From the NCBI RefSeq assembly GCF_000143415.4, contig NW_003314301.1, positions 1,480,981 to 1,544,980 of the forward strand: DNA of 64,000 bases, written 5' to 3'. Positions within the stretch are counted from its first letter, which is position 1. Every line of letters starts with the position of its first letter. Origin of the DNA: Selaginella moellendorffii (taxonomy: Eukaryota > Plantae > Lycopodiophyta). Positions 4,976 to 62,403 of the stretch are shown one piece after another. The translations under genes and the position numbers were made by a program. The notes under the pieces are model-generated. The model was not told the DNA's origin. It saw nothing but the letters and a program-made list of their open reading frames with translations, and made no database searches.

Positions 4976-4979
4976 GCAT

Positions 4980-6420: not shown

Positions 6421-6563
6421 TGTATGGTGGAATTTTGAGATCTACTAGACTCAAGGGAATATTTTGTTCATAATGTCCTTATGTCCGAAAGCCAGCATAT
6501 GACACTCTCTTGTGCTGAATCTATTGCAACCATTGTCACTCCACTCTGTGGCAAGCAAGGAGC

Positions 6564-6617
6564 GGATATTGGGGGATGGTGTTCCTCTTATTTTGGGCCA
6601 TCTTAAGGATGCTAAGG
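6564..6617 (+). repeat. Short remnant related to the interior of the 57921-60735 LTR
   Basis: ggatattgggggatggtgttcctcttattttgggccatcttaaggatgctaagg aligns with ggttattggggaaggctattccccttgtccgtgggcatcctaaggatgctaagg at ~59745-59798. Confidence 0.55.
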
Positions 6618-7807
6618 TGCACTATAGGACTCCTACTAATATTGAATCAAATAAAATATATAAACTGTGGAGATATTTAATCATATTATAAGTTTTTAAT
6701 TCTAAATTCACCAAGTACTGAAATCATGTCAACAAGAAAGACCAGATTTATATCAGTTTTTCAATATATTATATTTATTTAATTTAATTTTTCAGAAAGA
6801 AAATCCATTAAGGATTCAGAAAGAAATTTCAATATTTGGAAGTAGGCAAACACTTGCAACTTGCTATGCAGCAGTTCTCCTAAAACTCTAAAGCACTACT
6901 TGCATTTACTTGTGTTGAGTTAAACTCAACTCAACTTTGGACAAAACAAAAGGAAAATATCCTCACCAAGAACATTGCTATAATAAAAACTAGACTCCAG
7001 ATCGTAGTGACACTAGATTCAATAGGTAGCCTATAGGAAAACCAGGAGAAGAAAGGAGAGAAACAAAAGCCTACCTTGCTTATTCTTCAATTTAAGAACA
7101 CAAAGCTACTGTGCTCTTGCCATTAGGTTGACACTCGTTAATCTTAGAAGTCGCTAGAGAATATTGCCATTCTAGTACTTACTCAAAAGGGGAAAGAAAG
7201 AAACAACTTAAGTAGTGGGAAGAACACAAAAGCACTGCTCCAAAAAGAAAAGAAAAGAACTCCTTGATTCGGTGTTCCAAATCTTTAATCAATGGTAGCT
7301 CCCCCTCCCTGTTAAAGCTGTCCTTGTGGATCTTGGAAACCTTCTTTACGACTTCACGACATTATCCTTGTGTCGTAGCGCCCAGCTTATGCAATGGGAT
7401 GACAATCCAGCAAAACTCACACCCTTTGTTCCCTTGGCTCACCCAGTACTGCGTGCACAAGATCTAGTCGAGAATCAAGCAGTCAAGCAGCCTGAGAAAT
7501 TAGGGTTTAGGTGCCTTAAAATGGCACCATTTAGGTGATCTGATGTTCTAGTCTTTCGTCGATCGTTTCGAGATTGCCATGGGTTGATTGTCATGGAGGA
7601 GAGTTTTTTCTCCTAGATAAGGCAAGAGATTGCAGAGAAGAGGAATCACAAGCTTGCTTGTCTATGACAAGAAAAACAGGATTTCTAGAAGAAGCCAACC
7701 TCGCTCGAGGCCGAGAAGAAAGAGCTCAAAAAAAGGCTAGAGATGAGTTTTTCTCTCGGACCTGGGCCAAAATCCAAGCACGATGGTGGAAAACTACAAA
7801 GGAAAAC

Positions 7808-9903
7808 TAATCTTGAGATGGTTACAATTCCACCATCTGTTGTGCAAGGGCACATCACTCTTCACAAACCACCTGTGCAGCAGGAGGAGCCCACTGAGCA
7901 ACACCAGCCTCAACAGCAGCTTGCTGTGCCATAGCAGTTTGCAGAGTAGCAACAGCCTCCACCACTGCAGCCTGTTGAGCAGCACCAACTTTCACTGCCA
8001 CAGCTTGCTGAGCAGCAATAGCTTGCCAAGGAGCCATCTCCATCACAGCAGTTTGTCAAGGAGCAAATATTTCTACAACAACCAGCAAAGCTACATTAGC
8101 CAGATGAGGAGCAGCCACCTTTGCCACAGCAGCCACCCAAGCTACAGCAGCTTGCTGAGCCACACCACAATCTGCAGTAACAATTGGCACCACCACAATC
8201 TGAGCACTGACGACATGCAGCCATCTGATTCAGCAATGCATTACCAATTTCTTCACAAACGCATGAACACCAAACATGAATCACTATGATAAATATGCCA
8301 CCAACAATGTTCCAATCGAAGTAGAGGAGCAGCTGTAATCGAAAGTGTACCATACCATGCCTACAAACTTTTTGGAGCAGTACCATAACTCTAATATGGC
8401 GGTGCACATGTGGGACGGCATGGAGAGCTTCTTTTGCAACATTTTTGCACGACCAAATGAAAAGAAGTTGGTGAGCATGGCTCAAGAACTCGATCAGGTA
8501 AAGGGAATCTTTTGCACTATGCAGACTCACGAACTCCCAACACCAAACACCTGCTAAGAATCTTTTGAGTTAGCGTAGTAGTACCAACTCAATAATGCTC
8601 GCCTCACCAAAGAAAACATAGAGTTCAAGGCTTGGCTTCAAGTGCTTAAGATTGCCATTAATAACTACACTCACGACGAGCTTGAGAACTACAAAGAAGA
8701 ATTAGAGGCTAACAATACAACTGCCACTACCACCATAATGGAAGCTTGAGTCACAAGAGCTACCCAACTCTAGTCGTCAGAGAGTAGAGAGGTACATGCA
8801 TTTTGCATTGTAATTTTTGCAAAGGCACTTCTTAAGTTAGGAATTTAGACCAAGAGAAATCCTAATCTCAATTTCTAACTTAGGAAATGCCTTTGCAAAA
8901 ATCACGATGCAAAATGCATATACCTTTATTCTCTGACGACTAAAGTTGAGCAGCTCCTGCGGCTCAAGCTTCTATTATGGTGGTAGTGGCAGTTATGTTG
9001 TTAGCCTCTAGTTCTTCCTCGTAGTCCTTGAGCTCGTTGCAAGTGTAGTTCTTAATGACAATCTCAAGCACTTGAACCTGGGTCTTGAGCTCCATGTTTT
9101 CTTTGGTGAGGCAAGCATTATCAAGTTGGTACTGCTACGCTAACTCGAAAGATTCTTGGCAGGTATTTAGTGTTGGGAGTCCATGAGTCTACATAGTGCG
9201 AAGGATTCCCTTTACTTAATTGAGTTCTTGAGCCATGCTGGCCAACTTCCCCTTGTGTGGTCATGCAAAAACATTGCGAAAGAAGCTCTCCATGCCATCC
9301 TGCATGTGCACTACAATATTAGAGTTATGGTACTGCTCCAAAAAGTTTGTAGGCATGGTATGGTACACTTTCAGTTGCAGCTACTCCTCTGCTTCGATTG
9401 AAATGTTGTTGATGACATATTTATCATAGTGATTCGTGCTTGGTGCTTGATGCTCATGCGCTTGTAAGGAAACTAGTAATGCATTGCTGAATGAAGCAGC
9501 TACATGTTGTTGGTGCTGATGTCTAGCACAAATGTTTGTATGTGCTCAGACTGTGGTGGTGCCAGTTGCTGCAAGCTGCTGTAGCTTGGTTGGCTGCTGT
9601 GGCAAAGCTAGCTGCTCCTTAGCAGGCTGATGTAGCTCTACTAGTTGCTGCAATAGAACAGCTGCTCCTCAGCAAGCTGCTGTGGTGGAGATAGCTGCTC
9701 GGCAAGCTATGGCAGCGAAGGTTGGTGCTGCTCAATGGGCTACAGTAGTGGAGGCTGCTACTACTTTGCAAACTGCTGTGGCACGGCAGGCTGCTATTGA
9801 GGCTGGTGTTGCTCAAGAGGCTGCTCCTACTGCACAGGTGGTTCGTGAAGAGCAATGTGCCCTTGCACAATGGATGGTGGAATAGTAACCGTCTCAGGAT
9901 TTT
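7808..9903. repeat. Long inverted repeat (foldback), arms ~7808-8849 and ~8866-9903, ~16 bp spacer
   Basis: Mirror ORFs (8096..8530- vs 9183..9401+; 7783..8289+ vs 9619..9906-). Centre reads ...tttgcaaaggcacttcttaagttaggaatttaga / tctcaatttctaacttaggaaatgcctttgcaaa...; arms differ mostly by transitions plus small indels. Confidence 0.95.
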
Positions 9904-34209: not shown

Positions 34210-37068
34210 ACAACCAATTTTTGTAATCGCAGCCAAAGACTTTTGCAAATCAAGTTTCTAACTCTCTTTTCGTATTGAGTACAATCAAACAACTTGGGTT
34301 TTTTTGACAGAACTTCCTTCTAAATGTTTGGTCCATCTTACGTTTTTGTAGATTTGGAGAGGGCCGCGCTCAACTAAGACGTCCATTCATCCACTTTGGG
34401 AAGATGGTAGCCTGGCACTCTTTCCAAGGTCTGAGCAGATCTTCACAGCCTTTCTCGATTCCTTTGCAATTGATTTGCTTTCATTTCTTGTGTGCATAAG
34501 GAAATCGAGGAAAGAATGACTGAAGAACACATCGTAGCATGTAAGTTATTAAAATCCTTCTAAACCAGATGGACTTGGATCTACAGTGGTTTTCCTTCAA
34601 CATCTACTAGGAGATTTGGAAGGACTAGGATACAAGATCTGGAGTTTTAGATGCAGAGTCTTAAGATATAAATAACCCAAAGTCATAGCTCCAGCCACAC
34701 CGTCTGTGGGGCTCCTACCCACGACCACATGAGATGGATAATAGTTAATATTTTATAATTGAGAGAGTTTAGTTTTATGGGGACAAATTATGATTAAATT
34801 TTGCTTCTTGTTGGATTTGGGATCCCCAACCTTGTTTAAGTTTTTATTTGCAAAACTTAAATCGTTTCAAGGGTTAAATGCATAAACAACTAAATCATCT
34901 CAAATACATCAAGACAAAATATTTGGCCAATAAAGAACATAATGATATCATTAACTTTCCAGAATCTAGTGCTATAAGTTCTACAATAATGAATATGTTT
35001 TTTGGGGATTTATATTATTTAATTGTTTCTAATTGTTTATGTTTAAGTAGTGTTTAATGTTATTTAAAAGTTTTAAAAAGACTAAATTCAAATCCAGTAA
35101 AATAATTACTATTTAATTTATACATCATATTTAAATAAAATAATTTTATTTTAACAAAACATGATCCAAGTAATTTGATTTAACATTTTGAGTACATGCA
35201 AAGTCATATTTTAATTAGCCATAACTCATATAAATCTAAAAACAAGAAGTATTGAAACATTTTTATATTACACAAAGCAAAGAAAAGAATATTCATTCTT
35301 AAAAGCTTTTAAAAGAGAATTTATTCTGTAAATGTTTTTAAATAAATAACCATACAACCTAGTTTTAATATATTTTAACATGCTTATCATCTTTAAAATA
35401 TATATTTAAAATAAAAGTTCACAGATTGGAATAATTACTTTTGCAATAAAGAATTATAATTTAAATATTTTATAGTGTTTACAATTTTGTCAAAACCATA
35501 TTTTGAAGCTAGCCCAGTGATAAAGGTCCATAACAAAAACATCTTTTAAACATATTGATCACTTATATTTTTCATTTATTTTAGAAAACTGTAATCAACA
35601 GTTAGCGATTTTGGTGTAGATAGATAAATATTTAGAGGAATTTTTCCTTCTGATTCTTCCCTAATTTCATCATTTATAATTTAAATATTAGTATTAGAAT
35701 AAATAATAATATAAAAAAATTTAATTTATTTTTAAAAATAAAGAATAAATATTATTTGAAACAAAAACTTATATATAATTTTAAGTGGTTGTATTGAGAT
35801 TAAAAAATTAAAATATAAATGCTTATTTCTTCATGATGAATAGAAGTGAAATATGACAGTTTATATAATACAGTATTAAATATTATTTAAACTAATAAGA
35901 TTTTAATATGTGGAGAATTTTTGGTTTGCTTAAGCAAACCTGTAGGAGGACTGGGATGGTAATGAATATACTTAGAATATACTTGGATATTCTATCATCC
36001 AATGGTGGTTATTCATTTAGATTAATTTTATATTTATAATTTATAAAAATGTTTATAATTTATAAACTTTTCTAACCACTTTGTATCATCATGAGCATAC
36101 ATGGTTTTTGGAGCATGAGCCAAAGAAACTGTGTAATGTAAAGTGCATTGGTTGGGCTCTATGTCCATAATGGCAATTGCAAGGGAGCTCTCAAAGTTCC
36201 ACTGCCAAGGCCCTCAATCCAGAAGCAGAGAATCTGGAGCCAAGACTGGATGGACGAAGCAGCCAGTGATCCACATGAAGGGAAGAATGAAAAATAGGAG
36301 GAGCGCTCATAGAGGCCTCCTAGCCTCAATTGTGACAAGCATGAAGCATTGAAACCAGCTCAAGGATTTGAGTAGTGCCCCCTCGAGATCAATCATGATG
36401 CTATCATCATTCCTGGCCACTGCATTGTCCACTGGCTCCAATGGATTGCTCTTGTCCCTGGGAAGCGTCAAGAAAATTATATTTGGACTAGTGAATTGAT
36501 TGAGAATTGGCTCTCCCTGGAGGTTTGAGCTGAGAGCCACAATCCAAGATCAGAAACCCACTATGGCAGTACTGATTGATTGCCCAGAATCAATCAATCA
36601 ACCTGGAATGCATCTATGGATGGAGCATAGATCTTCCTCTGTATGGCTCCCTATTATGTGAGTGGGCAGTGTAGAAAACAACGATCAGTGGAGGACAATC
36701 TTTCTATTCCTATTCATTCCTCTTTTCTAAAGTGACCGATGGAGGGAGATTGTAGCAGTTGAGGAGTAAAGTCAGGCTGCTTCTAGCTTCAGCTTGGTCG
36801 ATGATGAGAAGTATCTAGCAAGGATGTTTACAAATGAGGAGAGTCAGTGCACGAAAAGGTTGAAAAGGTTCAGAAGATTTGTCACCTGCCGAATTGGTTT
36901 ATTGTCTACCATAACCCTAAGTTTGGCAAGTTGACAGATTTTAATTTTTAGCTCAAAGTTTTATTCTTTTTTGTTTTCGATTCTTCAAAGTGAAGTCTAG
37001 CTTATTTTTGAATCTTTTTACTAGTATAAATTAACTAGAGGTAATTTTGTTTAATCAATCACATAGAT

Positions 37069-38587
37069 ATGTCAGATTTGGATTGTGCTATGGATATTGT
37101 TCAGTCGTCACACTGAGGATTTGTCTACAGAAACAAATTCTTATGAAGGTTTAGTTTTTCTCTTTATTCCTTAGTATTTCTTGATTTATTTCTCTTTGGT
37201 TTTGTAGTTTCACAAGCAAAGAGGACAAAGTTGACCATCCTAAAAGCCACTATTGCATCACTTGTCTTTGAAAAAGCAAATTCAACCAAAATTCTTGAGC
37301 TGAAGGTTTTATCTACGTATGGTTTTGAAATCGTTTTTTTTCTGTAGTTTTGATTTGCTTTTTGCCTAGGTATGGAACTTATAAAGTTCATCTTGCAAAG
37401 AACACTTTGCGAAGTGCAAAATACTTAACTTATATAATGGATTGTACAGATATGCATGGCTTGCAAACTTTAATATGACGATTCATCCATGTGTGCACGA
37501 TTATATAATAAATTTATGGTTGGTAAATGTTTCTCACTTACAAGGTTTGTAATTTTTTTTAAAAAAATTAACAAGATTATAATTCTCTCACTGCAGATGG
37601 GTTGAACGACAGAAAAACCCAGTTTACCACCATGGAACTTCAGAAAAAGTTCTTTATATTACAGATTCTTCTATCATTCAAATTATAGATGATTTTGATG
37701 TTAAATTAAGATTACAACCAACTAGAGGAGCTTCTATATCATCTTTAATGGCTACTAGAATTTATCCACAAGCTAGACATGCTGTTGTAATCAACATTGG
37801 TGTTTTTCCTAAAAAAAAGATTGCTTCTTTTGATAATCCTTTGGACGTTACTATCGTAATGTTTTTTCCTATTTAATTTTCTATTTCTAAGATATTTTCA
37901 TAGCTCTATATGCACCTGGAGCATGAAGAGCAATATCATCATATTGTAGCAGATTTGTATGTTGGATATATGCCAAAGTTTTTATTTTTTAATATTATGA
38001 AAAGCATGAGTGTATCAGGTGATTTAGCAACACTTGGAAGTACTTTATTTTTGCCACTAGTTGATTCAAACGAAATTCAGAGGCTCAATGAAGTTTATAA
38101 AACACACCGTGGTCTCACTTCTAAAGACAAGGTAATGTAAATTGTTTACATCTACTTTCAACTCTAACTTCCAATTATACAGATTAGTGGATATTTCATC
38201 CCTGACAACCAACAGAGCCTCACTCAAGCTGAAAGTTTTTGCTCATTTTGCTCTTTCACAATGTTAGAGCAGAGAGAAGATAGTTTTGTTGTTTGTGCAA
38301 AGTGTAAAAGGTGTTCCATCCCTCGTAAATCAGCTACAATAACTGGTTCTATTATATCAAATGATATGATGGAATATAGAGTTATAGTGCATGATAAAAT
38401 GGTGGATAAAATTTATAATTTGGATGAAGGGTCTATGGTCAAGTTTGCTATAGAGTCCCCAGAAAAGATTGCCGTTTATCTGTCTTCAAAACCAACAGGA
38501 TTCTTTCTATTGAATGAGGCAAATATTATTGTCCATTTTGAGACACCAAACAATTCAGCCATGGAAATTGCCAACAACCAAAAATAG
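37069..38587 (+). pseudogene. Spliced RPA70/RPA1-like multi-OB-fold ssDNA-binding protein gene (Helitron-associated type), with a frameshift near 37475
   Basis: GT-AG exons give YIMDCTDMHG..LYNKFMVGKCFSLT|RW...YITDSSIIQ (OB-A-like), TLGSTLFLPLVDSNEIQRL (OB-B-like end), and FCSFC-x13-CAKC followed by TITGSI...YRVIVHDK (C4-zinc OB-C). The last three exons are open in frame. Confidence 0.6.
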
Positions 38588-38709
38588 ATACAATTGTCTT
38601 TTGTCTATTTTTCAATTGCTTTCTCTATAATACAAATATCTATTCATGAAATCTTGCAGTGCTTCTTTTAACAATTTCTAGATTTCAAAGCACACAAACT
38701 AGAAATCCC

Positions 38710-38981
38710 ATGGCAACGACTCACAAGATTGCTACTGATTGCATTGCACAATCAATTAGAGAACTAATATGCAATAAACACAAGCTGCCTCTGAAAGCCC
38801 CTCTCAGGTAATCTACCACATTAACATTGTACGCCTAACACCGGAATCCAGGAAAATGATCATTGTGCATCTGGCTAAGGAGTTCCTTAAGGGCTTCAGA
38901 GAAGCTAGGTGAAGAATGTGGTGTATTGCTTTCTATACTAGATGCTAAACCACATCTTGCAGTAAATGTGCAAGAAAATGA
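38710..38981 (+). CDS. Putative small 3-exon ORF, ~57 aa (MATTHKIATDCIAQSIRELICNKHKLPLKAPLRKMIIVHLAKEFLKGFREASKCARK)
   Basis: ATG 38710; two short GT-AG introns (~38808-38851, ~38909-38962) preserve the frame to TGA 38979-38981. Confidence 0.35.
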
Positions 38982-40322
38982 ATGTGAAAGAGCTTAAGCC
39001 ACAAGCAATTCCAAATTTTAGCTTTGTTGTTGATTTGTTTGACCTAGATGCTTGAAGCCATGTACGCTCTTGTAGTGCTCTTGGCAAAAGGGTTGGAAAA
39101 GTCCTTGTATCTTTGACATCTCTTTGTCACAGAGCTTGCGGATCGCTAAACTAAGGCTCTTGCTTCTGAATGACCGTGCTCTTACTAGATTCTACTGGAT
39201 AACTTACAAAAGAAAAACAAAATAGCTTAGAAGAAAGTTAAATGGGAAGGCACACATACATCAAAGGTTTGCTTTGGTTCTTGGCCCTAGATATCTGGCA
39301 ATGTTGAGCTCTCCTTCACCCTGTAGTAGCTCAAAAGAAATCATTTCAAGTACCTGCATCAAGGTATATAAAAAAAATGTCCTAACGAGAAAGAAAGTTA
39401 CAAACTACTTCAAACCATCTTTGAGTCCATCGACTTTTCAGGGATTTGTCATTGGACGTGCAAGGGTTTTCCACAGCCAACCCTGTAAACTGAAAACATC
39501 ATGCTAGATACCAGTCTCCATAGTGAGAACAATGTTACTTGTTTGTGGAATCATCCTACCTGGTCGAAGATATCTTGCTTGACATTTTGAACAACTTTCT
39601 TTGGACTTGGCTACCTTATCCAGGGTTGCCACTGTCAATAGAGTCTGAAGATGCTCTCACTACGGATTTGTAATGATGAAAATCTTCTCTCTGGGCAGAA
39701 GTAGAAGTTTAAGGCACTGGAAGAGCTACTGTCTCATAGGATTTGGGATGACACTATCCTTACATTTGTATCCTCTAGTATAATTTTTGAACCTGCAAAG
39801 ACTCTACGTTTCCAATGGCAAAGTACTAAATCCAAACTTGAGAAACCAGCTCCAAAAACTAACAAAGCCACGATGTTACTCTAGAGCTTCTTATCCTGTG
39901 GGAGCTTATGTGAATGAAAAGGAAAAACAAAAGGAAGAAAGAAAAAAAAAGGAGGAATGATCACACACCTTGTGCTGGATCTCTCTTCAATCTTCTAACC
40001 ACGTCCAGTGCCCTGTCCAGTCCTTTAATCTAGTGTAGCGTAAAGAAGATGAAGACCATTCCTGAAAGACTTACAAAAACAAAATGTCACCTTCCCTCGG
40101 AAATCTCCTATTGCATGATCCATTCAACTGCTCAAGTGGCAAGACCCAAGAATCCATGCGAGGTAGTGGTGTTAAACCCAAAAAAAAGAGATCTAGAAAC
40201 AATACAATTGAGCAGGCAGTCAATTACCTAAGAATGTGCGAGTCTGGTACTTGTGCTCACGTTTCTCTCATAAGCCCATTTTAGGCTCATTTAAATAAAG
40301 ACTTAATATAGCTTTAGGGCAC

Positions 40323-41480
40323 TGTCGCGAATGTGACTTCGGGTATTGAAAGTTACCTGTCAGTCAGTCTTTACGGACACTCTTTCCTTACTACCACGAC
40401 GGTAGGAGGTCGGTATTGCTGGTTCCCTTTATCAGCCCCTCTTGTTCGAGTATTAATAAACTGGGCTTAGCACCTGTACTTAGCTAGATGGACATAAAGT
40501 AGGAACTCCTATGTGTTTTTAGCTAAGCATACTCAGCCTGGCTCTTAGTTCTCTTTTGCTCTGTCTTGCACTGGCTTAACAAGAACCCTCGCATATTGAG
40601 ATTAATCCCTCAATATCGCTGGATAATAACTTACTGTATCTCCCAAACACCCTCGCTATCATGCCTTTTGTGTTAGCCTCATTTTAGTCCCAAATGCTAT
40701 TTATGGAAAGTGTCCAGATTTGCTCATTTGGCATATCTACAGAATGTAGAGATCGGCCTGAATACAATGGTGTTCATCCCGTGTCTAAATTCACAATCTA
40801 TCGCCATTCCATATTTAGTAAGTTTCGAGCTTGTCCTAGAAATTAACTCCTGATATTAAAGGAGGCTTGGGGTGAAAGCCCAAAGCGTGTGTTCCTCAAG
40901 AGGGAGGGGGGGGGTGGGGTCAGGGGGGGTTGTGGGTTCCAAATGTATAGTAGGGATAATGGGTAGGTCAAGTATGGCCAACCAACCTAAGGCATAGTCT
41001 AGCTCTTGTTTGCGTGCCTATCTTTGTTTTGTGTCTGGCTTGGGTCTAAGCCCAAGTTCCATACCATGCTAGCTAGTGAAGTACCCATGTCCTCACGTTA
41101 GGCCATTGGTATGCTGAAATAGCACCAGACTCCATTTGGCTCCGTTTTGCATGCTTGTCTTGGCATTGGGATACTGATTACTTTAGGACTGTTCCAAGTC
41201 ACTCCATGCCCCTATCCTTTTGCTTCTTGCGATATATGCTTGAGAGTTGCTTCGTGGTTCGATTTTGTCACTCCTTGGCTCCATGCTTGGGAGTTTGGCA
41301 CCGTTCCTTCGTTCAATGGCCCAAGGCCCTAAACCTCAGGTTCCACACCACTGTTTATGGACATGTGGCATGTGACACGTAGCATCTGACATGTGGCACA
41401 TAGAGGGTTAGGTTCCGCTTCGTGGTGTTATCCTATGGTAAATCACCATAGGATAAAGGGTAAAAACCACGTGCACTACA
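40323..41480 (-). mobile_element. Solo LTR (short form) of the same family as 57921-60735
   Basis: TG...CA ends; flanks GGCAC/AGCAT (decayed 5-bp TSD); 40323-40860 matches 57921-58460 and 40865-41480 matches 60138-60735. Confidence 0.85.
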
Positions 41481-41691
41481 AGCATAAATAGCTTTCAACA
41501 GAATAACATTGAGAAGTAAAAGGTCTTTGATTGTTTCTATTGGTCTAGATTATCAATTATCAGCCTTCACAAAACTGTTGATTGAAAGATAGAGAATTAA
41601 TACTTGCTGAAAGTAGGCCAAAAATAGTCCATTCGGTTTGATTGTTGAATCTCTTTAAAAAATCTTGATAAGCTAAACAATCATAAAAAAA

Positions 41692-41726
41692 ACTAATCTG
41701 GATGCACCCACCTATGTGGTGGGTGT
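41692..41726. other. GC-rich hairpin after an A-run: candidate rolling-circle element terminus
   Basis: aaactaatctggatg CACCCACC-tatgt-GGTGGGTG; on the minus strand the stem is followed by 12 nt ending TTAG|TT, the Helitron-type 3' end geometry. Confidence 0.5.
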
Positions 41727-41773
41727 AAGGACATCAAGGGCAATAAGGGCATTTAACTATAAAGGGCAAAATT

Positions 41774-44700
41774 ATGACAAAGAGAAAATTTGAATGGACA
41801 AAACTTCTAGATGCAAAATTGTTATCAATTCAAGGATCTGCAAATAAAAAAGCAAAAGAACTAAAATTCAACCATAATATTGATTTAATTGAGCAATAAA
41901 TTCTTTCTAGATACTATTATTTATTAAGAAAGAATAAAAATGAGCAAATAAAAACTATTAATATATCCAACGAAAAACATGAAGAACATACTTTACAAAA
42001 CCAAAAAAATATATATACAACAGAAGAAGACAAAATAGTTATGGAAACTTGGAACTCACAAAAACAAACAAATGAAAAAATAAATATTTTTCGATAAAGA
42101 ACAAGGAGTACTATATCAGATGAAAAACTTAAAAGAAGAGTATATTATATTAGAAGCAAAGAAAAAAAAACAATAAAAGAGAAAGATCAACAAGAAAATG
42201 AATATGACATAAACAATCCAAAAAGTATGAAAGCACTACAAATGTATAATGAAGCTATACAGAATATACCGATATATCCATGTAAAATATGTAAAAGACT
42301 TTGGTTTAAATATAATAAAAAAACAAGAATATGCATGCAATCAATACATGATAAATAAAGAAAAATATAAAAGTCCAGAAAAAATTAGAATGAATCAAAT
42401 TGATTAATATATAGAACAACTAAATGATATTGAGGAGAATATGATAGCTCTACATATTTTATTTGTAAATATAACAATACCAAATCAACCTCAATATTAG
42501 CAGCGCATAAAAGGAGGAATAATAAATGTCCTAACTAATATTAAACCAATAATTAATAAACTACCAAGAAAATTTGAAGAAACACAAACAATAACAATTC
42601 ATTTGAAACAAAGATTAACTGATAAATATTATTATAAATATGGAATAGCCAGAACACATTATATTTATAATAGTATAAAAACATTACAAGAAACCAAACT
42701 ATATAAGAAAAATAAAATTAATATAGATGAAAACTGGTTTCAACAAGCACAAAATTTAGACAATATAGATAATAACACACAAATAATATTAGAAAACGAA
42801 TTACAACAAGAATTAAATCAAGATGATAAAAGTGAAAATCTTATAGACAACCCTAATAATGAAATATTACCAACAGATACTATGGTAATTAGCTTCTTAG
42901 ATGCAAATCAAATAGATAATTTTATAAATAAAGTTTTAGTTATAGCACGTGGTCAAAGACAACACCCATTAGTATTATTTGTAGATGAAAATACTGAAGA
43001 AATGGCATATCCAAAACTATTTTGTGGAAAACCAAGACCATTAAACATAAAAAGCAAATTTACATATCAAGAAATAATCCAATGGGAATTAAGGAATGAG
43101 GATAGAAAATTTGCATAACATATTGAATATATAATTACAGTAGCAGTAAAAACTGAAATCAAATTTGTCAATCAAAATGCAGGTTTTAGATTAAGAAAAT
43201 TTACTTATGAAGGAAGAAAAATCACATCAAAAGATGTGCTTGTAAATAGAAATATGGATAAAATATTAAAGTCAAACATAGGTTTTAGAGATTTAAAAAA
43301 TCTAAGAACATCACCAGATAATTTAGAAGCACTAAAAAAAGATGCATTTGCCATGATAAGACAATTAGGACCACCGNNNNNNNNNNNNNNNNNNNNNNNN
43401 NNNNNNNNNNNNNNNNNNNNNNNNNNNNNNNNNNNNNNNNNNNNNNNNNNNNNNNNNNNNNNNNNNNNNNNNNNNNNNNNNNNNNNNNNNNNNNNNNNNN
43501 NNNNNNNNNNNNNNNNNNNNNNNNNNNNNNNNNNNNNNNNNNNNNNNNNNNNNNNNNNNNNNNNNNNNNNNNNNNNNNNNNNNNNNNNNNNNNNNNNNNN
43601 NNNNNNNNNNNNNNNNNNNNNNNNNNNNNNNNNNNNNNNNNNNNNNNNNNNNNNNNNNNNNNNNNNNNNNNNNNNNNNNNNNNNNNNNNNNNNNNNTGCA
43701 CTAATATGGTTAGAAAATCCACCACAAACATTAGAAAAAATAAAAGAATATGCTAATGAAAATATATGTACTGATTCAGAGAAACTAGCAGATAATATAA
43801 AAAATATTCAAACTCATAAACATAGAAAAACATGTAAGAAATATAAAAATATAAATTGCAGATTTAATTACCCAATTCCTCCAATGCCACAAACAGAAAT
43901 CTTAGAGCCTATAAAAGACATTACAAAACATGAAAAGGATTCATATACAAAAAAATAAAAACAATACTAAAAGATAAAACTATAGATCTAAAAAATTTAG
44001 AGTTTGATGCATATTTAAAAAATAGTAGGAATAACATATGAGCAATATAAAGCTACAATAAGATAGACAATAACAAGTATAAAAAAAATTTATAAACGAA
44101 AACCAAAAGATATAAACACAAATACTTTTAATAACAAATTATCAAATTTGTGGCAATCAAATGTAGATATACTAATTATTCTTGATCCATATGTAGCAGC
44201 ATCATATTGTTTATCATACATTGCATGTATTGAAATAGAAATAACAAAAACATTATCAACTGTATTAAAAAAATGGCAAGAAGAATGAACAAATGTATTT
44301 AATAGAGTTTGGTTATTAAGAAATAACTTCATACATGGTAGGGAAATGCCAATTCAACAAGCACTTTTTTTTAATATTGTCAATCCCATTTCATCATATG
44401 ATTAGAACTGTAAAGTTCATTGATACTAAACCACAAGAACAATGAACAAAACATTTAAAAACGAAACAAAACCTTGCAAAAATGCAAGAAGATGAAACAA
44501 ACATAGTAGTACTTGGACTAATTGAAAAATACATGCAAAGACCAGAAGAATTAGAAGATTTAACATTAGCAGAGATAACAACTGAATATATAATTGAAAA
44601 AGAAGTAACAAGACGAAAACATTAAAAAAACAATATAATTAGATATATAAACTTTAGTAAAGAAAAAGATCCAGAAAAGTGGGCTTTTGATAGATTAATC

Positions 44701-47150
44701 TTACATAAAAAATTTAGAAAAAGAAGAAGATCTTAAAGAAATGTACACAACATATATGAATGCATATGAAGCAAATATGGAAAAAATAAATGAAAAACAA
44801 TATCAATATATATATATAGAATAGTAACAAATGAGAGTGAATTTGATTGGGAGAATCCAGAACAAGAAGCAAATAAAATATTAACAGAACAAGCATAGTA
44901 TATACAAGAAATAAACATAAACCAAACAGATGAATTTGATATAGGGAAAGATTTATTCAAAATGAAAAATAACAAAAACTTAAATTTATATATAAAAGAT
45001 AAAATATTAACAAATACAACAATTATAATACAAGATGAATACCTTATGGAAACTAGTAAATATCACCAATTATGAAGAACTCTTAATAAAAAGTGAAGAA
45101 TAATACATGATGACTTCATATTGAAAAAAATAAAACAACCTAACAAACAATTATGCTTATTTTTAACAAGAGGAGCAGGAACTGGAAAATCAATGCTTTT
45201 AAATACACTTACAGAAACACTCAAACAATATTATAAAACAAACCAAGATATAAATAATGAACTAGGACAGACAATATTAATAACAACACCTACAAGAAAA
45301 GCAGCATGTAATATAAATGGTTCAACAATACATTCAGCTTTTGCATTTCAACCAGAAGCATCAAAACAACGTCAAACAATATTAACAAGTGACACATTAG
45401 ATAAATATAAAAGAAAGTTTTCAATAATAAAATGTTTAGTAATAGATGAAATATCAATGGTAAGTATAGAAATGCTACAAGATATAAATAGAAGATGTGA
45501 AAGCTTCAAAACAACATATGAAATAGACTTTGATGGGATGGATTATATATTTACAGGTGATTTCTATCAATTAAATCCTACATTTGAAGCACTAATTTAT
45601 TCAACAAAAAAATATAGACCTGAAAATGATGTCTCCATACACCACCCATGGAAAAATAATTTTAAAATCTATGAACTTACTGAAATAATGAGGCAAAAAT
45701 ATGATATAATCTTTATAAAAGCTTTAAATAAAATAAAAATAGGAGAACAAACAGATAAAGAGCTAGAATATATAATTAAACAAGTCACCACAGATACATA
45801 TAACACGAAATACTATTCTATATTTACAACTAATGAACAAGTAAGAGAACATAATGAAAAAATAATACAACACATACAAGGTAAAGTTATAATTATAGAA
45901 GCACAAGACAAACATGGAAATTCCTGTCCTACACATTTCACGCTGCCTGATGACACAAGAAAAACACAAGGACTACATAAAATATTACATTTGAAAAAAA
46001 AAATGGCAATTAAAATAACACAAAATATAGCAACAGAGATGGATTAGTAAATGGAGTAGATGGAGTATTACAAGATGTAACCCAGATTGAAGAAGAACAA
46101 ATAATATAGATAGAATTCCCAAATATAAAAACAGGTGAAAAAACAAGAGCTAAAGAAAACATAACAATAAGGCAAAATAATGAATAAAACTGGACACCAA
46201 TTAAAAAAATAACAAGAACAATAAATATTACTAAAAATAAAAACTATGTTATAAGTAGAACCCAATTTCCAATACAACCATGTGCAGCAAGAACAATACA
46301 TAGAGCACAAGGATCAATAGTTATGTAATTAGGATATGACCCATATAAAACAAAATATCCAGGACAAGCATATACCGCATTATCAAGAGCACAAACACTA
46401 AAAGGGATACATTTATATAGACCAATTGAACATAAACATATTAAAATCAATAAAGATGCAGCTAAAAAAATAATAAGAATGACAACAGAAGCACCATGAC
46501 AAATTGATTTAATAGATTTACAAGAAGAAGAAAAAGCTAACCAAACAATTATACGAGTTCTAAATACAAGATCTATTACTGCACATCAAGAAGATATAAA
46601 GAGTGATTCACAATTATTAACATCAAATATAATATGTATGCAAGAAGTAAGAACACAAAAACATGAGGAATTATATTTTAATAAATATAAATCATATATA
46701 CATGAACAACCCCCACATATAGCAATATTGCATACAAATGACTACAAATCAGAAATAGTTGAACATTTAAAAACAGAAACAATGGCAATGTCATATGTAT
46801 CACTAGAAAAAAATTTAAAAAAAATTACAGATAATAAATTTACATAGAAAACCTGGAACAAATATACATATATTCATAAAACACTACAAAAATATATACA
46901 GAAAATAGATAATAAAAAACCAGTAATAATTACAGGAGATTTTAATATTGACTACCAAATAGAAGAAGTAAAACCACTTCAAACAATAATGGAGAAAGAA
47001 GGATATATACAAATAATAAAATACAATACACGTAATAATAAATTAATAGATCATATATGGATAAAAGATATAATATATACAAAAGCAGGAATAGCACCTG
47101 CATATTGGACAGATCATAACAAATTATATATCATAATAAAAAATATTTAA
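41774..47150 (+). mobile_element. Degenerate Helentron/HLE2-type Rep-PIF1 helicase-AP endonuclease transposase
   Basis: N-terminal CKICKR; DUF6570-like LNDIEENMIA...IKGGIINV...LPR...I.LKQRL; EEMAYPKLFCG; LRTSPD....KKDAFAMIRQLGPP; post-HUH ALIWL; QTHKHRKTC...CRFNYP.PP; Rep tyrosine motif DPY....YCLSYI (~44185); helicase GAGTGKS, DEISMV, GDFYQL, ELTEIMRQ, TIHRAQG, AYTALSRA; then EEP endonuclease LNTRS, ICMQE, IITGDFN, IDHIW, TDH (46550-47150). Confidence 0.9.
43377..43696. other. Assembly gap (320 N)
   Basis: Run of n; lies where Rep motifs 1-2 (HUH) would be. Confidence 1.
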
Positions 47151-47154
47151 AAAC

Positions 47155-47201
47155 AAAAACAAACCAAGCATTGCTGCAATGCAATGCGCAGCAATTTATT
47201 A
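47155..47201. repeat. Hairpin motif immediately after the endonuclease stop; candidate Helentron terminus; second copy at 61552-61594
   Basis: aaacaaaccaagca-TTGCTGC-aatgcaatgc-GCAGCAA-tttatta, also containing the palindrome GCATTGC-t-GCAATGC. Confidence 0.6.
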
Positions 47202-48023
47202 TGGATATTTATTAAATAAAATAATAAATCAATTTAATGATCTGATATTCATAACATTTTAATTTTATATTACCTCACAATCTTTTCTTTGAGGCACAAA
47301 CCAAAAAAATTAAGTGAAAACATATCCTACATTTTTAGTATGTCGTGGGGAAATTAATTTTTAAATTAATATATTTCATTTTAAGCAGAAAACAATCATT
47401 GTTGGATTTTCTTTCAGAATATAATATTAATTCTTTTTAGAATTGATATTATTAATAGGTTATTGGATTTACATTCAAATATTTTATCTGAGATATAAAT
47501 AGAGACTAAAGAAAAATAAAATATATCTTATTTAAAATAGAATTTTATAAAATTTCTAATTTATAATTTAATTAAAATACTTAAAATCTTCTAATACTAT
47601 AAATATATATTTACTCAAGAGTTGCTGGTTACTTGTGGCAGCTCAATAGCTTCTAGTCATAAAACCTAAAGTTTGTATATCTTGCTTCTTCTCGTTTTGC
47701 GTACACACAATCAAGTCAGAGAGAAGAAGTAAAAGTGGTGTGTATTCACAGGATCCTCAAACCATGTCAGAAACTTTAAAAATCATCTAAGAACTTACAT
47801 TTGTGAAGTAAGAGCATGTCACTGAGCAAACGTTTGAGATCTGGATGTCTTGACGTGCTGGGATCATGCTGGGAGCATGTTGGGAGAGGCTTGGCAACTT
47901 GAAAGATTCCTTGAATTGAAAAATCCTTTTCTTTTTCTTAAGTTTAAGTCTTACACAAGTTGATCGGCGGCAACACCCCACAATGGATTCCACTGGACCT
48001 TTGGGGCAGTGGTTCTAAGCACA

Positions 48024-48551: not shown

Positions 48552-49888
48552 TCAAAGGCCGAGGAGAGTTTTCACGTTGATCGGATAGCTTTCGTTGATG
48601 TTTCCAGACCATAGCTTGTCCGCGATGAGCTTGTAAGTGGAGCCTGTGGGATGATACTCGTCCCAGAAAATGTACTGTGCGGCATCCTCACACACTGGAA
48701 CGTTTGGCAAGCAAGGGACGGAGCCATTGAAGTTGCCAAGGCCGCAACAGGCAGTGTCATTGTAGAGAAATCCTTGAAAAGTTGAGAGTGAGCGATCGAA
48801 AAGCAAAAGAGCTGGAGTAGTTTTTCGCGTACCGTATTGCGAGTACTTCTCAGAGATGTCCATGAGAACATTGTAGAGGCTGTTGTAGATGAGATCTGCC
48901 TCGCTGAGCGAAGATCTCAGGCGGACGAGCAGATCGAAGAGCTTGGTGTTGTACTGCTGAGACATGTCGTTGAGGAAACTGGAACCATCCAGTCTGATCG
49001 TTGAGAACTTCGCGAGCTGCGATGGTACAGAGCCGAGTGGAGACAGAGAAGCGACGACGATTCGTCGGGCTCCAATGCTGTAGAGCTCGTTGAGCTGCTC
49101 GTCGAGGCCAGAGATGAGGAGATCGATGAAGCTTTTGCGGTTGTAGTCACGCAAGTAACTGGATCCCGGAACCAAGTAATTGTTGATGAAGTCGTTGCTT
49201 CCAACCGAAACGTAGAAGATCGACTTGGAAAAGATTTCGTTCGTTCGCTCTCGGCCAAACTTCTCGGACAGCTCGCTCTTGACGTCTTTGAGATAAGCTA
49301 GCTGCGTCTGCATTGGAATTCTTTGACCCTGGAAATGATAAACCAAGTCTAAGTTAAGTTCTGAGCAAACAAAAACTAGAAAGTAGGAGCTAAACAAAGA
49401 ACCAAGAAAAAAATTTCTCGACAAAAAAACTAAGATAAGAACTCACGAAGATCGAGCCAGTAGCGTTGAGGATCCCGGATCCAGCAGAGGCAAAGTTTAC
49501 ACCTTGATCATAACTTGGCCGGGACAGATATGGCGGTACCAGCGGAAGATTTAAGAAATCGGCTGGTAGAGGAAGAACACTAGATGTAAGAAGGAAACGA
49601 AAGAAGAGTTGAGATTTTGGTACCTAGATAGTCGATGCTCAAGCGTCCATTTGTGAATCTTCCAGTCGGCTCATGAGTGTCGAAATCCCTGCCATAGGGA
49701 AGAAATTTCGACTGCGCGACCGTCCAGAGCCAGTTATTGTTGCCACAATCCACAGTAGAGTCGCCGAGAATGAACAGCGCAGGGACGACAGGCTTGCCAG
49801 AAGAATCGGCAGCGGCGATGCGCGCCGCGATCACGAGAAATAGCGCAAGACGATGGATCAAACCTTTGCAGTTGCGCAACATTTCCAT
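48552..49888 (-). CDS. GDSL esterase/lipase, 4 exons
   Basis: Signal-peptide-like segment; FILGDSTVDCGNNN; PYGRDF...PTGRFTNGR; GVNFASAGSGI; GSNDFINNY; catalytic FWDEYHPT. Confidence 0.95.
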
Positions 49889-57920: not shown

Positions 57921-60735
57921 TGTCGTGCATGTGACTTCGGGTATCAAAAGTTACTTGTCAACCAATCCTTACGGACACTTTTACCTTACTGCCACAATGG
58001 CAGGAGGTCGGTATTGCTAGTTCCCTTTATTAGCCCCTCTTGTTCAAGTGTTAGTTTACTGGGCTTAGCACATGTACTTAGCTAGATGGACATAAGGTAT
58101 GAACTCTTATGTGTTTCTTGCTGAGCATACTCAGCCTAGCTCTTAGTTCTCTTTTGCTCTGTCTTGCACTGGCTTGACAAGAACCCTCGCGTATTGAGAT
58201 TGGTCCCTCAATATCGCCGGATGATAGCTTACCGTGTCTGCCAAACACCCTCGTTATCATGCCCTTAGCGTTAGTCTCAATTCGGTCCCAAATGCTATTT
58301 ATAGAAAGTGTCCAGATTTGCTTATTTGGCATATCTACGGAATGTAGAGATTGGCCTGAACACAATGGTGTTCGTCCCGTGTCCAAATTCGCATTCTAGC
58401 GCCATTCCATATTTAATAAGTTTTAAACTTGTCCCAGAGACTAACTCCTGGTATTAAGGGTAGGTTTGTGTGAGACACAAAATCCCTAGGCCCCAAAGTG
58501 GAGCCAGAAGGGCGCCACGTGGTAGTGGCCGAAGCGAGAGCTAAACGAGCGTAACACGTTTGGACCAAAAGCTCCGACTTGAAAAGTCAAGAGCGGGAGT
58601 GGAACTCCTAAAGAAGTGCTCGAGGAATGAGCACGAAGCGAGCCATAGGCAAGGCTCCAAAAAGGGACCCAAAAAGGACCAACACATGACACGTGGAAGT
58701 GTCCGAGATGGACCCGAGTTGGAGTCCGAAGTGGAGTCTGAGATGGAGTCCGAAGTGGAGTCCGAAGTGGAGTCCGAGAAGGACCCGAGATGGAGTCCGA
58801 GATGGACCCGAGATGGAGTCCGAGATGGACCCGAGATGGAGTCCGAGATGGAGTCCGAGATGGACCCGAGATGGAGTCCGAGATGGACCCGAGATGGAGT
58901 CCGAGATGGAGTCCGAGATGGACCCGAGATGGAGTCCGAGATGGAGTCCGAGATGGACCCGAGACGGAGTCCGAGATGGAACCGAGACCGAGACCAAGAC
59001 CGAGGCCGAGACCGAGATCGAGACCGGGACCAGGTCCGAAACCGGGACCGAGTCCGAGTCCGAGTCCGAGTTCGAGCCCGAGTCCGAGTCCGAATACTAA
59101 TACAGGAAGTTGGGTGAAAGCCCAAAGCGATCGTCCCCTAGGGGGGGGGGGGCTGCGGGGGGCTCCAAAAGTATAGTAGGGAGAGTGTGGGGGTTGGAGC
59201 CCAGTGGAGCCAGTTGGGCCAGGAAGGGCCAGTTTGGCCCAGGAAGGGCTAGTTTGGTCCGGGAAGGCCATACCCAGTGTTGGGTGATGAACTGACCACT
59301 GGGAAGTCCAAGACTAGAGTGAATACGGACCGACAAGCGGGGTAGCTTGGTGAAGTGTTCAAGAGCCGGCTCTAGTTCCCCCGAGAGATCGACTGGCCGA
59401 TGCTCCCAGTCCAAGTGTGAGTGGCACTACCTACTTGGATACCTGTCGTGGCTCAACGGAACCTCGCTCTAAGCCCATGGCTAGAGCACCTAAAGGCGGA
59501 AGGCAGGGAGAGTACCCAGGTGGCTCGCGTAAGGCCACGGTGTTCCGAAATGTTGTCCCAAAGGCCCAGACTGTGGAAAGGAAGAGGAGTAGTCCTCTGG
59601 GGTAGTGACCAAAGACACGGTCGTGGGGTGAGGAAGTCCCAGAGGACCGTGGGACTTAGTGGTCGGGCCTGTGGGCCCCGATCCAGTGGCAGTGTTGGCA
59701 AACACGGCCAAGGGCAGAAAGGGACTTAGTGGGGACTGACAGAGGGTTATTGGGGAAGGCTATTCCCCTTGTCCGTGGGCATCCTAAGGATGCTAAGGAG
59801 TGGATCTGAGATGACCACTCACGGATGGTTTGCCTAGTCTTGGAGAGCCAAGACTGTGATGCAAGTGGTATTGGACTACCAGTGTGGCAAAGGTGATTGG
59901 GCATGGCCTTAGCGTAACGGGCTGCTATGTCGGTGGTACCTTTGAGTGTCGGTCATGGGATCGGACACGTGGAGCACTTGGACCAAGTGCAAATGTTGAG
60001 TGGCATGGATGCCATTCTCGGGGCTAGCAAGTCCCAAGTCCTGAATTGGACTTATGGAGGTTGTGAAGGAGACTCCTCCAAGTGGTCAGAGGTGTGGTTA
60101 AGTGACTAAAGTAGAATGGAAAATTTAGTCGCTTACAGTTTGGGGTGAAAGCCCAAAGCATGTGTTCCTCAAGGGGGGGGGGGGGGGGGGGCTATGGGGG
60201 GTTCCAAATGTATAGTAGGGATAGTGGGTAGGTCGGGCATGGCCGACCAACCTGAGGCATAGTCTAGCTCTCGCTTGCGTGCTTGTCCTTGTTCTGCATC
60301 CGGCTTGGGTCTAAGCCCAAGTTCCATTCCATGCTAGCTGGTGGAGTACCTATGTCCTCGCATTAGGCCACCAGTATGCCGAAATAGCGCCAGACTCCGT
60401 CTGGCTCCGTTTTGCGTGCTGGTCTTGGCATTAGGATGCTGGTTACTCTAGGACTATTCTAAGTCGCTCCGGGCTCCTGTCCCTTCGCTCCTTGGGCTTT
60501 ACGCTTGGGAGTTGCTCCGTGGTTCGGTTCCATCACTCCTTGGCTCCACGCTTGGGAGTTTGGCACTATTCCTTTGTTCAGTGGCCCAAGGCCCTGAACC
60601 TTGGGTTTCTATGGACACGTGGCATGTGACACGTGGCATCTGTCATGTGGCACAAAGAGGGTTTAGGTTCCACTCCGTGGTGTTATCCTATGGTAAATCA
60701 CCATAGGATAAAGGGTCAAAACCACGTGCGTTACA
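57921..60735 (-). mobile_element. Solo LTR (long form, ~2.8 kb) with perfect 5-bp TSD
   Basis: GGAAA|TGTCG...TTACA|GGAAA; reads TGTAAC... on the minus strand; no gag/pol motifs; homologous to 40323-41480. Confidence 0.9.
58703..59095. repeat. Compound minisatellite in the LTR: 12-mer GAGATGGAGTCC interleaved with 11-mer GAGATGGACCC, then 6-mer GAG(A/T)CC
   Basis: About 24 long units followed by about 18 hexamers, read directly. Confidence 0.95.
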
Positions 60736-61551
60736 GGAAATAATGGATTAAAAAAATAAGATTCTTAAATGGTTGAAGGTATACCTTGAATGATCTCTAT
60801 GAACCATTGGTGCAAATTTTCTCTAAAGCCTTTAAAGTATAAGGCTACCATCATATCCTCTTTTTGGATCACGCCTTGTATTGTAAATACTTATAATAAG
60901 GAGTTAGTGCCAATGTTTACTAGTGTTCTGAGGAGTACTCTAAGTTTTATAAGATAATAGTGAGTGCTAGAAACTTATTTGCAAGATGTCCCTGATTAGC
61001 TGTGGCTCTAAGAAAATCATGAAATAAACCAAAATTGCCATATACTCCTCTACAATATCATCATAATTGCTATTGCAGTGTCCTAGCTATCTTCAAAATT
61101 TAGTGGAAATAAATGATTCTTAATATCTCATTTACCACTTTTTTCCTTTCATTTGTAATCTAGAAACCCAAGGTGGCTTATAGTATATTTACTCCATCCC
61201 AAATCTAAGGAGCACATGACTTCAAGTCCATCTTGAAAGGCCATCTCGTGATAGTCTTTTATCATATAGATCTAGGATCTCCCTTACAGCCATGGCTAGT
61301 ATAACTATGTTGCACAATTGAGAGATTTGTCCTTTGGTTTCGAAACACTTGAATAACAACCAACAAAATATTTAAAAGAATTGAAAGTATTAAACTTGTA
61401 GGTCATACCTTTCTCTTGTCAGCTTCTCATAAATCATTCAATATAGGAGTTTCTTTGGATGCCAATGCAAAGTATAATTTATAAACTGATTTATAAATCA
61501 TAAACATATTTATAATTATGGATCAATTGAATTATTCATGACACTACTATT

Positions 61552-61594
61552 AAACAAACCAAGCATTGCTGCATGCAATGTGTAGCAAATTATT
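61552..61594. repeat. Second copy of the 47155 hairpin terminal motif
   Basis: aaacaaaccaagcattgctgcatgcaatgtgtagcaaattatta; flanks are unrelated to those at 47155. Confidence 0.7.
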
Positions 61595-62403
61595 AATTTC
61601 TCAAGAAGTTATAAACCTTTGATACCTATTATGAAAAATAAGGTTTATTACATGTGTATATACATTACCTATAACACAAGTTCATTTATTAATATACTTA
61701 GTTGATAAGTTAGAGATGGTTGGTCCTAGAGATAGCCAGAATATATTTTTCATCAAGTGTTATTTCTGGGTTTTAAAATCTTTAGTAAGACAGAAAATAA
61801 AACTTGAAAGATCTATAGTTGAAAGTTTATTATTAATAGAGATTTTTTTTATATGCATAATATTTTAGTGATAATTTGGTTATTGGTAGTCCATAGTTTA
61901 TATCTTTATTTGATTATAGTAGCATTTGATTGAAAACTCCAGGAAAATAAATTTAACCTAGTACATAAGAGCATAAACATTTTCCCTTTATATTTGCATT
62001 TGAAGAGGAAATGCAACCTATCAGAAATATCAACAAGAAAAAATTGTAAGAGATAATACAAGAATGCAATATATTATTTACTATCCAAACCAGTAGGTTC
62101 TTGAAATTTTAAAATGTCTACCACTATTATCTAAAATAGCCTTCATAACTTATTTGTGATGTCTCTATTTAGTCAAAGATGCCTATATTTAAAACTATCC
62201 ACTAAGACAAAAACTCTAATTCTTAATGCTTTTCCAAGTATTAGCATCTTATAGTCTTTATGATAGTGTAGGCATTTAGATCATATAAATTCTCCACCAT
62301 AGTATTGGTAGTTCCATCATGTTTATATTCAGCCTCCACAATACCTATTTAATCGAGAATGCATTGCCACTGATAAACAAAAAAGTCAGACGGAAGGAAT
62401 ATT

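Follow-up and report, generated by a model that had tools for sequence, protein, structure and literature searches.

A decayed endonuclease-bearing element of probable Helentron (HLE2) type and its empty site in the lycophyte Selaginella moellendorffii

Bounds and termini of the inserted element

We analysed a window of 64,000 nucleotides from Selaginella moellendorffii (assembly GCF_000143415.4, contig NW_003314301.1, positions 1,480,981 to 1,544,980 of the forward strand); unless another sequence is named, all coordinates are those of the window. The window contains an inserted element at 35923-47200 that carries a decayed transposase gene of probable Helentron (HLE2) type, with a Rep nuclease, a PIF1 helicase and a C-terminal endonuclease. 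The element and its ends are as follows.

35923-47200, + strand: the whole inserted element, bounded by the empty site in GL377672.1; each boundary is ambiguous by 2 nt (TT)
35921-35940, + strand: 5' terminus, consisting of the left inverted repeat TTGGTTTG and then an 18-nt palindrome GGTTTGCTT/AAGCAAACC; unique in the window, DNA fold z -2.96
47161-47200, + strand: 3' terminus, consisting of the right inverted repeat CAAACCAA, a stem-loop ATTGCTGC...GCAGCAAT (47170-47195) and the end ...TTTATT; marked by a drop in contig depth and by the empty site
61552-61596, + strand: isolated 3'-terminal fragment of the same family, 45 nt, 91% identical

Scaffold GL377672.1 of S. moellendorffii assembly GCA_000143415.2 (stretch 328131-349466, the locus of the GDSL protein of this species) is collinear with the window at 92-96% identity and connects window position ~35922 straight to ~47201. 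Thus, the element is absent from this stretch of the scaffold, in which no Helentron coding remnant is found either. In-silico removal of 35923-47200 yields a seamless alignment with the empty site, GAGAATTTTT joined to ATGAATATTT (also given as GAGAATTTTT joined to ATGAATA). There was no target duplication at insertion, and, as the joint is ambiguous by TT, it fits an insertion of the T^T kind. The element measures 11,278 bp, which falls to 10,115 bp once a nested solo long terminal repeat (LTR) and its target duplication are subtracted.

The left repeat TTGGTTTG is the reverse complement of CAAACCAA at 47161-47168. The 8-bp stem at 47170-47195 stands directly after CAAACCAAGC, 5 nt from the end of the element, and its sequence is kept in the 61552-61596 fragment. 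No matching 5' terminus is present near this fragment; GL377672.1 also carries the stretch around it (window 60781-62140, 88% identity). An earlier reading of the sequence alone (below, the sequence-only reading) had placed the relic at 41692-47201, which holds for the transposase gene but not for the element, whose extent, 35923-47200, is twice as great. Terminal inverted repeats were also sought at 41.4-41.8 kb against the 3' end, giving nothing above chance; the true 5' end lies 5.6 kb farther upstream.

The scaffold with the empty site has an insertion of its own. At 3859-8105 of GL377672.1 (reverse complement), opposite window ~35780, there is a 4.2-kb insertion with 42% GC and without Helentron coding, which precedes the Helentron site by approximately 140 bp. 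Different insertions have struck the two versions of this intergenic spacer.

The transposase gene

The domains were delimited on the translations and on a profile made from 13 full-length Helentron-type homologues, against which the stop-free pieces of the broken frame were searched one by one.

41706-41729, + strand: GC-rich hairpin CACCCACC/GGTGGGTG, DNA fold -10.4 kcal/mol, z -2.9
41774-47150, + strand: Rep-Hel-EN transposase pseudogene, from translations and profile tiling
42098-43115, + strand: zinc finger (N-terminal CxxC) and DUF6570-like block, profile positions 154-221, 281-309 and 311-531 (the last with E 3e-38)
43119-44622, + strand: Rep (HUH nuclease) domain, broken by the gap, profile positions 536-618, 716-806, 852-916 and 977-1026
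43377-43696, no strand: assembly gap of 320 N within Rep
45097-46496, + strand: PIF1-like SF1 helicase, Pfam PIF1 at 1.3e-19 (piece 45097-46044), profile E 6e-78, 3e-17 and 7e-8
46500-47147, + strand: C-terminal EEP/AP endonuclease, profile E 2.4e-7 and 4e-14, Exo_endo_phos_2 at 6.5e-5 (46848-47147)

In a three-frame translation, the zinc finger, the DUF6570-like block, Rep, the PIF1 helicase and the EEP endonuclease follow one another along a broken frame of the + strand. The pieces that match the homologue profile are colinear from position 154 to position 1926 of 1927 (E 1e-5 to 1e-77); nothing further matched this profile in the 64-kb window, and the - strand gave no match at all. Thus, the single colinear, decayed frame with DUF6570-like, Rep, PIF1 and EEP parts that the sequence-only reading had described is borne out by both the tiling and the translations, and all the motifs that it named are present on the + strand. 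These are, for Rep, AMIRQLGPP directly before the gap, ALIWL directly after it, and YVAASYCLSY; for the helicase, GAGTGKS, VIDEISMV and GDFYQL, with ARTIHRAQGS and YTALSRAQT farther along; and for the endonuclease, LNTRS, MQEV, GDFN, IDH and TDH. The frame is interrupted by at least 13 in-frame stops and at least five, probably seven, frameshifts, hence this copy is dead.

The profile spans of the DUF6570-like block overlap the Pfam DUF6570 spans of the homologues P0061, P0034 and P0043, and the best Atlas matches of the piece 42501-43115, by language-model features, are DUF6570 clusters (0.96). The Rep pieces match the profile at E 1e-15 to 1e-19; in the two-tyrosine motif (YVAASYCLSY, ~44190-44230) the homologue-invariant tyrosines are kept, while an invariant lysine is substituted. 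Solved PIF1 helicases match the helicase piece at 5.5e-21. The hairpin at 41706-41729 is situated 45 nt ahead of the transposase ATG, within a leader that is otherwise AT-rich.

The endonuclease could, in principle, be a separate LINE fragment lying by chance beside an ordinary Helitron. Among solved structures, the endonuclease of the homologue family is indeed closest to those of LINE-1 (E 1e-15 to 1e-16), a likeness that also fits the ancient endonuclease capture proposed in the literature. However, the endonuclease shares its frame with the C-terminus of the helicase from 46188 to 47147, its read depth equals that of the rest of the transposase part, and it lies inside the termini defined by the empty site. 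No reverse transcriptase, which in a non-LTR retrotransposon would stand beside the endonuclease, is found in any frame of the element. The endonuclease pieces match the C-terminus in 23 of the 150 nearest proteins and, more generally, match the C-termini of Helentron-type proteins, with no match to the one protein compared that combines reverse transcriptase and endonuclease. Thus, a stray LINE fragment is scarcely conceivable, and the endonuclease is part of the transposase, as had been supposed.

The assembly gap within Rep

On the profile, the left edge of the gap stops at position 618 (after AMIRQLGPP) and the right edge starts at 716 (at ALIWL, with which the HUH motif ends in the homologue consensus). 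For 34 homologues, the number of Rep residues implied to be missing has a median of 97 (24 of the 34 at 94-98; full range 64 to 116), to be compared with the 106.7 codons that 320 N would hold. Thus, a single gene continues from one side to the other, and the gap is of about the right size. Only at a gap length of exactly 320 would the two sides agree in mod-3 phase, so that an unbroken frame across the gap is no more than a possibility. Order and orientation across the gap are correct, since the 5' end of the element lies to the left of the gap and the 3' end to the right, and the empty site makes them one insertion.

Some features would suit the alternative that the AT-rich island is contamination or was wrongly joined at the gap during scaffolding: the island has 24% GC in flanks of 45-50% GC, the gap is in mid-island, and among the contigs listed none bridges 43377-43696, some entering the gap from the left. 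At the same time, the flanks met by the 5' and 3' ends, one on each side of the gap, are neighbours in an independent assembly, the DNA runs of the organism itself are rich in the family, and the CpG depletion of the island matches that of the surrounding repeat block. We therefore regard an artefact as highly improbable.

Copies and composition of the family

Contigs matching 41400-47399 were retrieved from two DNA runs (1,717 and 3,944 contigs, 85-100% identity; Logan). Along the transposase gene, the depth summed over these contigs ranges from hundreds to thousands; beyond 47200 it drops to 71-94. Thus, the family is multi-copy and its 3' boundary is sharp. A DNA run under a second organism label yielded near-identical fragments at low depth and the same LTR family, and hence comes from the same or a sibling species. 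One RNA run gave no reads on the stretch, which has no bearing on expression.

Compared with the other copies, the one at 41774-47150 has many private changes, mostly A where the others read G. Three of its stop codons are sense codons in other copies, and four frameshifts inferred from homology coincide with length differences of 1-2 nt. Among the 40 best-supported differences, this copy has A and the others G in 15 cases (the reverse in 3), and T against C in 6 (the reverse in 2), that is, a decay bias from GC to AT which is stronger on one strand.

The island has 23-28% GC, with 50% A on the + strand, and its flanks 44-50% GC. In the transposase, the GC content at codon positions 1, 2 and 3 is 36, 28 and 12%, with A at 59% of third positions; this dependence on codon position indicates that the A-rich bias arose under selection on the frame and is a trait of the family. 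Two related metagenome loci have 36-43% GC in their Helentron coding regions.

Throughout 34500-48000 the observed-to-expected CpG ratio is 0 to 0.6, compared with approximately 1 in both flanking genes (STT3-like on the left, GDSL lipase on the right), so the heavy decay of the methylation type is limited to this repeat block. The open reading frame on the right (48552-49424, - strand) codes for the GDSL lipase, and a protein of S. moellendorffii shares 98% identity with it.

Assignment to the Helentron (HLE2) class

A phmmer search with the helicase piece gave 12,149 relatives, none more than ~40% identical. The nearest proteins are 31-41% identical, and those with names are all from animals (bivalves, wasps, a fish); in the protein searches, identity never exceeded 41% and plants were absent from the matches. 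A profile search of a word-indexed database yielded 13 proteins and no more. The other pieces match many of the long helicase relatives in the same order. In five long relatives, Pfam finds Helitron_like_N, PIF1 and Exo_endo_phos in all five and DUF6570 in three; among 22 further ones, DUF6570, Helitron_like_N and PIF1 are present in all 22, Exo_endo_phos in 11 and Herpes_teg_N in 7.

The element combines an HUH Rep and a PIF1-like SF1 helicase in one open reading frame, a DUF6570-like block upstream of Rep, a fused C-terminal EEP domain, a T^T-compatible insertion without target duplication, and a stem-loop after the right repeat. DUF6570 is a marker of HLE2 in the HELIANO survey (Li et al., NAR 2024; PMC11417382). 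Thus, the claim that this architecture is that of a Helentron/HLE2 is upheld by relatives with the same domain order, the insertion site, the inverted repeat and the 3' stem-loop. We assign a probability of about 0.88 to the reading that 35923-47200 is one copy of a multi-copy, endonuclease-bearing Helentron (HLE2) family.

As Rep and helicase are common to HLE1 and HLE2, the element might alternatively be a canonical plant Helitron (HLE1) with an acquired endonuclease. Such elements have TC...CTRR ends with a 3' hairpin and an A^T site, and lack both DUF6570 and an endonuclease. The present element, in contrast, has TTGGTTTG... and ...TTTATT at its ends, its site is compatible with T^T, and a DUF6570-like block accompanies the endonuclease. 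The 22 further long neighbours carrying DUF6570 also argue against this alternative, as do the comparisons with Helraiser, the bat HLE1 transposase: the helicase piece does not reach it at E 0.001, and with the homologue profile it scores 157 bits, compared with about 760 bits summed over the pieces of the element. An HLE1 origin is accordingly very unlikely.

Several observations weigh against the HLE2 assignment. The terminal inverted repeat (8 nt perfect, 11/15 when extended) is below the 12-16 nt given for HLE2, and the energy of the 3' stem is no better than that of shuffled sequences (z -0.16). The HUH histidines fall within the 320-N gap, one codon ahead of ALIWL. In a Pfam check on single stop-free pieces, which the sequence-only reading had proposed, PIF1 was recovered (1.3e-19) and Exo_endo_phos_2 remained sub-threshold (6.5e-5), whereas neither Helitron_like_N nor DUF6570 appeared in any piece; as its domain is split by a stop, DUF6570 gives no match even at E 0.1. 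The evidence for counting 35923-40322 as part of this mobile unit is the empty site together with the inverted repeat; several neighbouring insertions could in principle imitate a single one, and the contig depth covers 41400-47399. Finally, the assignment is based on domains, termini, the empty site and profile scores.

Among described groups, the element is most readily compared with HLE2 subgroup b ("Helentron"; PMC11417382). It shares with this subgroup DUF6570, Rep, PIF1 and a fused Exo_endo_phos, Herpes_teg_N and OTU in the neighbours, a TT-compatible insertion, inverted repeats at the termini with a 3' stem-loop behind the right one, and land-plant hosts, a likeness of domains, termini and hosts. 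It differs in the inverted repeat of 8-11 nt and in a candidate RPA-like gene upstream, RPA being limited to subgroup a in that survey (PMC11417382). HelenSM92 of Sphagnum magellanicum (PMC11417382) is likewise an HLE2 from a land plant without seeds and has both TT sites and terminal inverted repeats; by its description, however, it carries a captured GIY-YIG rather than a fused EEP domain. The animal Helentrons and derivatives of them such as DINE-1 (Thomas et al. 2014, cited in PMC8788227) have the same Rep-Hel-EN order, and the nearest named relatives come from animals (bivalve, wasp, fish); in contrast to them, the element has a lycophyte host, a helicase only 31-41% identical and a far more A-rich sense strand. 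Helraiser (PDB 7LCC) shares the HUH Rep, the PIF1-like helicase and rolling-circle transposition, but is a distant match without DUF6570 or endonuclease, and has HLE1 termini (TC...CTRR) and A^T sites.

Until 2024, HLE2 elements were believed to be missing from land plants. The statement of the sequence-only reading that the type is described only rarely from land plants is dated, as 13 of 74 land-plant species have HLE2 according to HELIANO, and the endonuclease-rich subgroup b has land-plant as well as mixed hosts (PMC11417382). Our literature search found no paper naming Selaginella together with Helentron or Helitron2. The kind of element is thus known from land plants since 2024, and this copy adds a cleanly bounded lycophyte example that belongs to a multi-copy family and for which the two termini, the empty site and a nested LTR are known. 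It may serve the annotation of Selaginella repeats, where Helentron helicases should not be taken for host PIF1 genes, and provides a starting point for studying the spread of endonuclease-bearing Helitron-like elements among plants. The understanding of how such elements work is unchanged by it.

A spliced gene upstream of the transposase

Between the 5' terminus and the transposase we read three consecutive in-frame exons from the sequence.

37597-37855, + strand: first exon read
37904-38131, + strand: second exon
38183-38587, + strand: third exon

The introns are of the GT-AG type (48 and 51 nt), there are no stop codons, and more exons are likely upstream of 37597. The last exon contains CxxC...CxxC and then YRVIVHD. 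By its Atlas features (0.91; 19 of 30 matches in the Pfam set headed by the Rep_fac-A_C cluster), the gene is possibly RPA70-like; Pfam and PDB sequence searches with it were empty, and a single-sequence AlphaFold model (pLDDT 43) was unusable. The gene is within the insertion bounded by the empty site, and its position is that described by HELIANO for RPA in HLE2, upstream of RepHel (PMC11417382).

The three exons comprise 296 codons without a stop, compared with approximately one stop per 90 codons in the transposase; at equal decay the chance of this would be ~0.04.

Proposed mechanism

In the following scheme, established knowledge of Helitron-like elements is carried over to this family. 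While active, a copy would have moved by rolling-circle transposition: the Rep tyrosines would nick one strand at the termini, the 5'-3' helicase would peel the nicked strand away, and the single strand would re-insert at TT. Recognition and stop signals would be provided by the terminal repeat and the 3' stem-loop, and the upstream spliced gene, a candidate RPA, may supply single-strand DNA binding. For the fused endonuclease, target nicking is the usual guess in the field.

Origin of the family

Instead of descending vertically over a long time, the family may have come from an AT-rich donor by horizontal transfer. The codon usage of the transposase (A3 59%, GC3 12%), beside host genes of 50-58% GC, would agree with this, as would the distance and the animal origin of the named nearest proteins and the mixed hosts of subgroup b in HELIANO. 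On the other hand, no close donor sequence was found, the copies differ by up to 15%, which points to long residence, and the introns of the upstream gene (48-51 nt) are Selaginella-sized. Composition is, moreover, weak evidence, given the other AT-rich islands in the window. The A-rich composition is compatible with a horizontal origin, without showing it, and we consider such a transfer unlikely, though less so than the alternatives weighed above.

The absence of this copy from the reference scaffold, together with the other copies that have sense codons at three of its stops, might point to recent activity. A broader proposal, in which the family joins a subgroup b endonuclease with an intron-bearing upstream RPA-like gene, was recently active and came from an AT-rich donor, seems to us doubtful to a similar degree.

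Nested insertions and minor features

Two further features lie within the element.

40323-41480, + strand: nested solo LTR (TG...CA, 1,158 bp) with the flanks GGCAC and AGCAT
36310-36549, - strand: possible fragment captured from the host, resembling the HAD N-terminal motif of GPAT (sub-threshold Pfam match to HAD_RAM2_N, E 0.047)

The fragment at 36310-36549 has 41% GC within the AT-rich element and no usable Atlas match; it may be a captured host exon of the plant glycerol-3-phosphate acyltransferase type, which we note as a weak lead. Exact-protein look-ups with three open reading frames of the element found nothing.

The repeat at 40323-41480 is 83-87% identical to 57921-58468 plus 60140-60735, and its family has a summed contig depth of 2.4e5 to 6.5e5. 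The other copies of the LTR stop at 41480/41481, and in most of them a tRNA-iMet primer-binding site, TTTGGTATCAGAG, comes next. The TG...CA ends, the abundance and the primer-binding site after most copies thus identify 40323-41480 as a solo LTR nested in the Helentron, and its nesting gives the order of the insertion events.

What appeared to be a second copy of the element after the LTR at 60.7 kb proved to be a solo LTR, 816 bp of unrelated sequence and the 45-nt 3' fragment. This sister LTR (57921-60735) is also solo, is absent from GL377672.1, and has a perfect GGAAA target duplication and a nested insertion of 1.67 kb.

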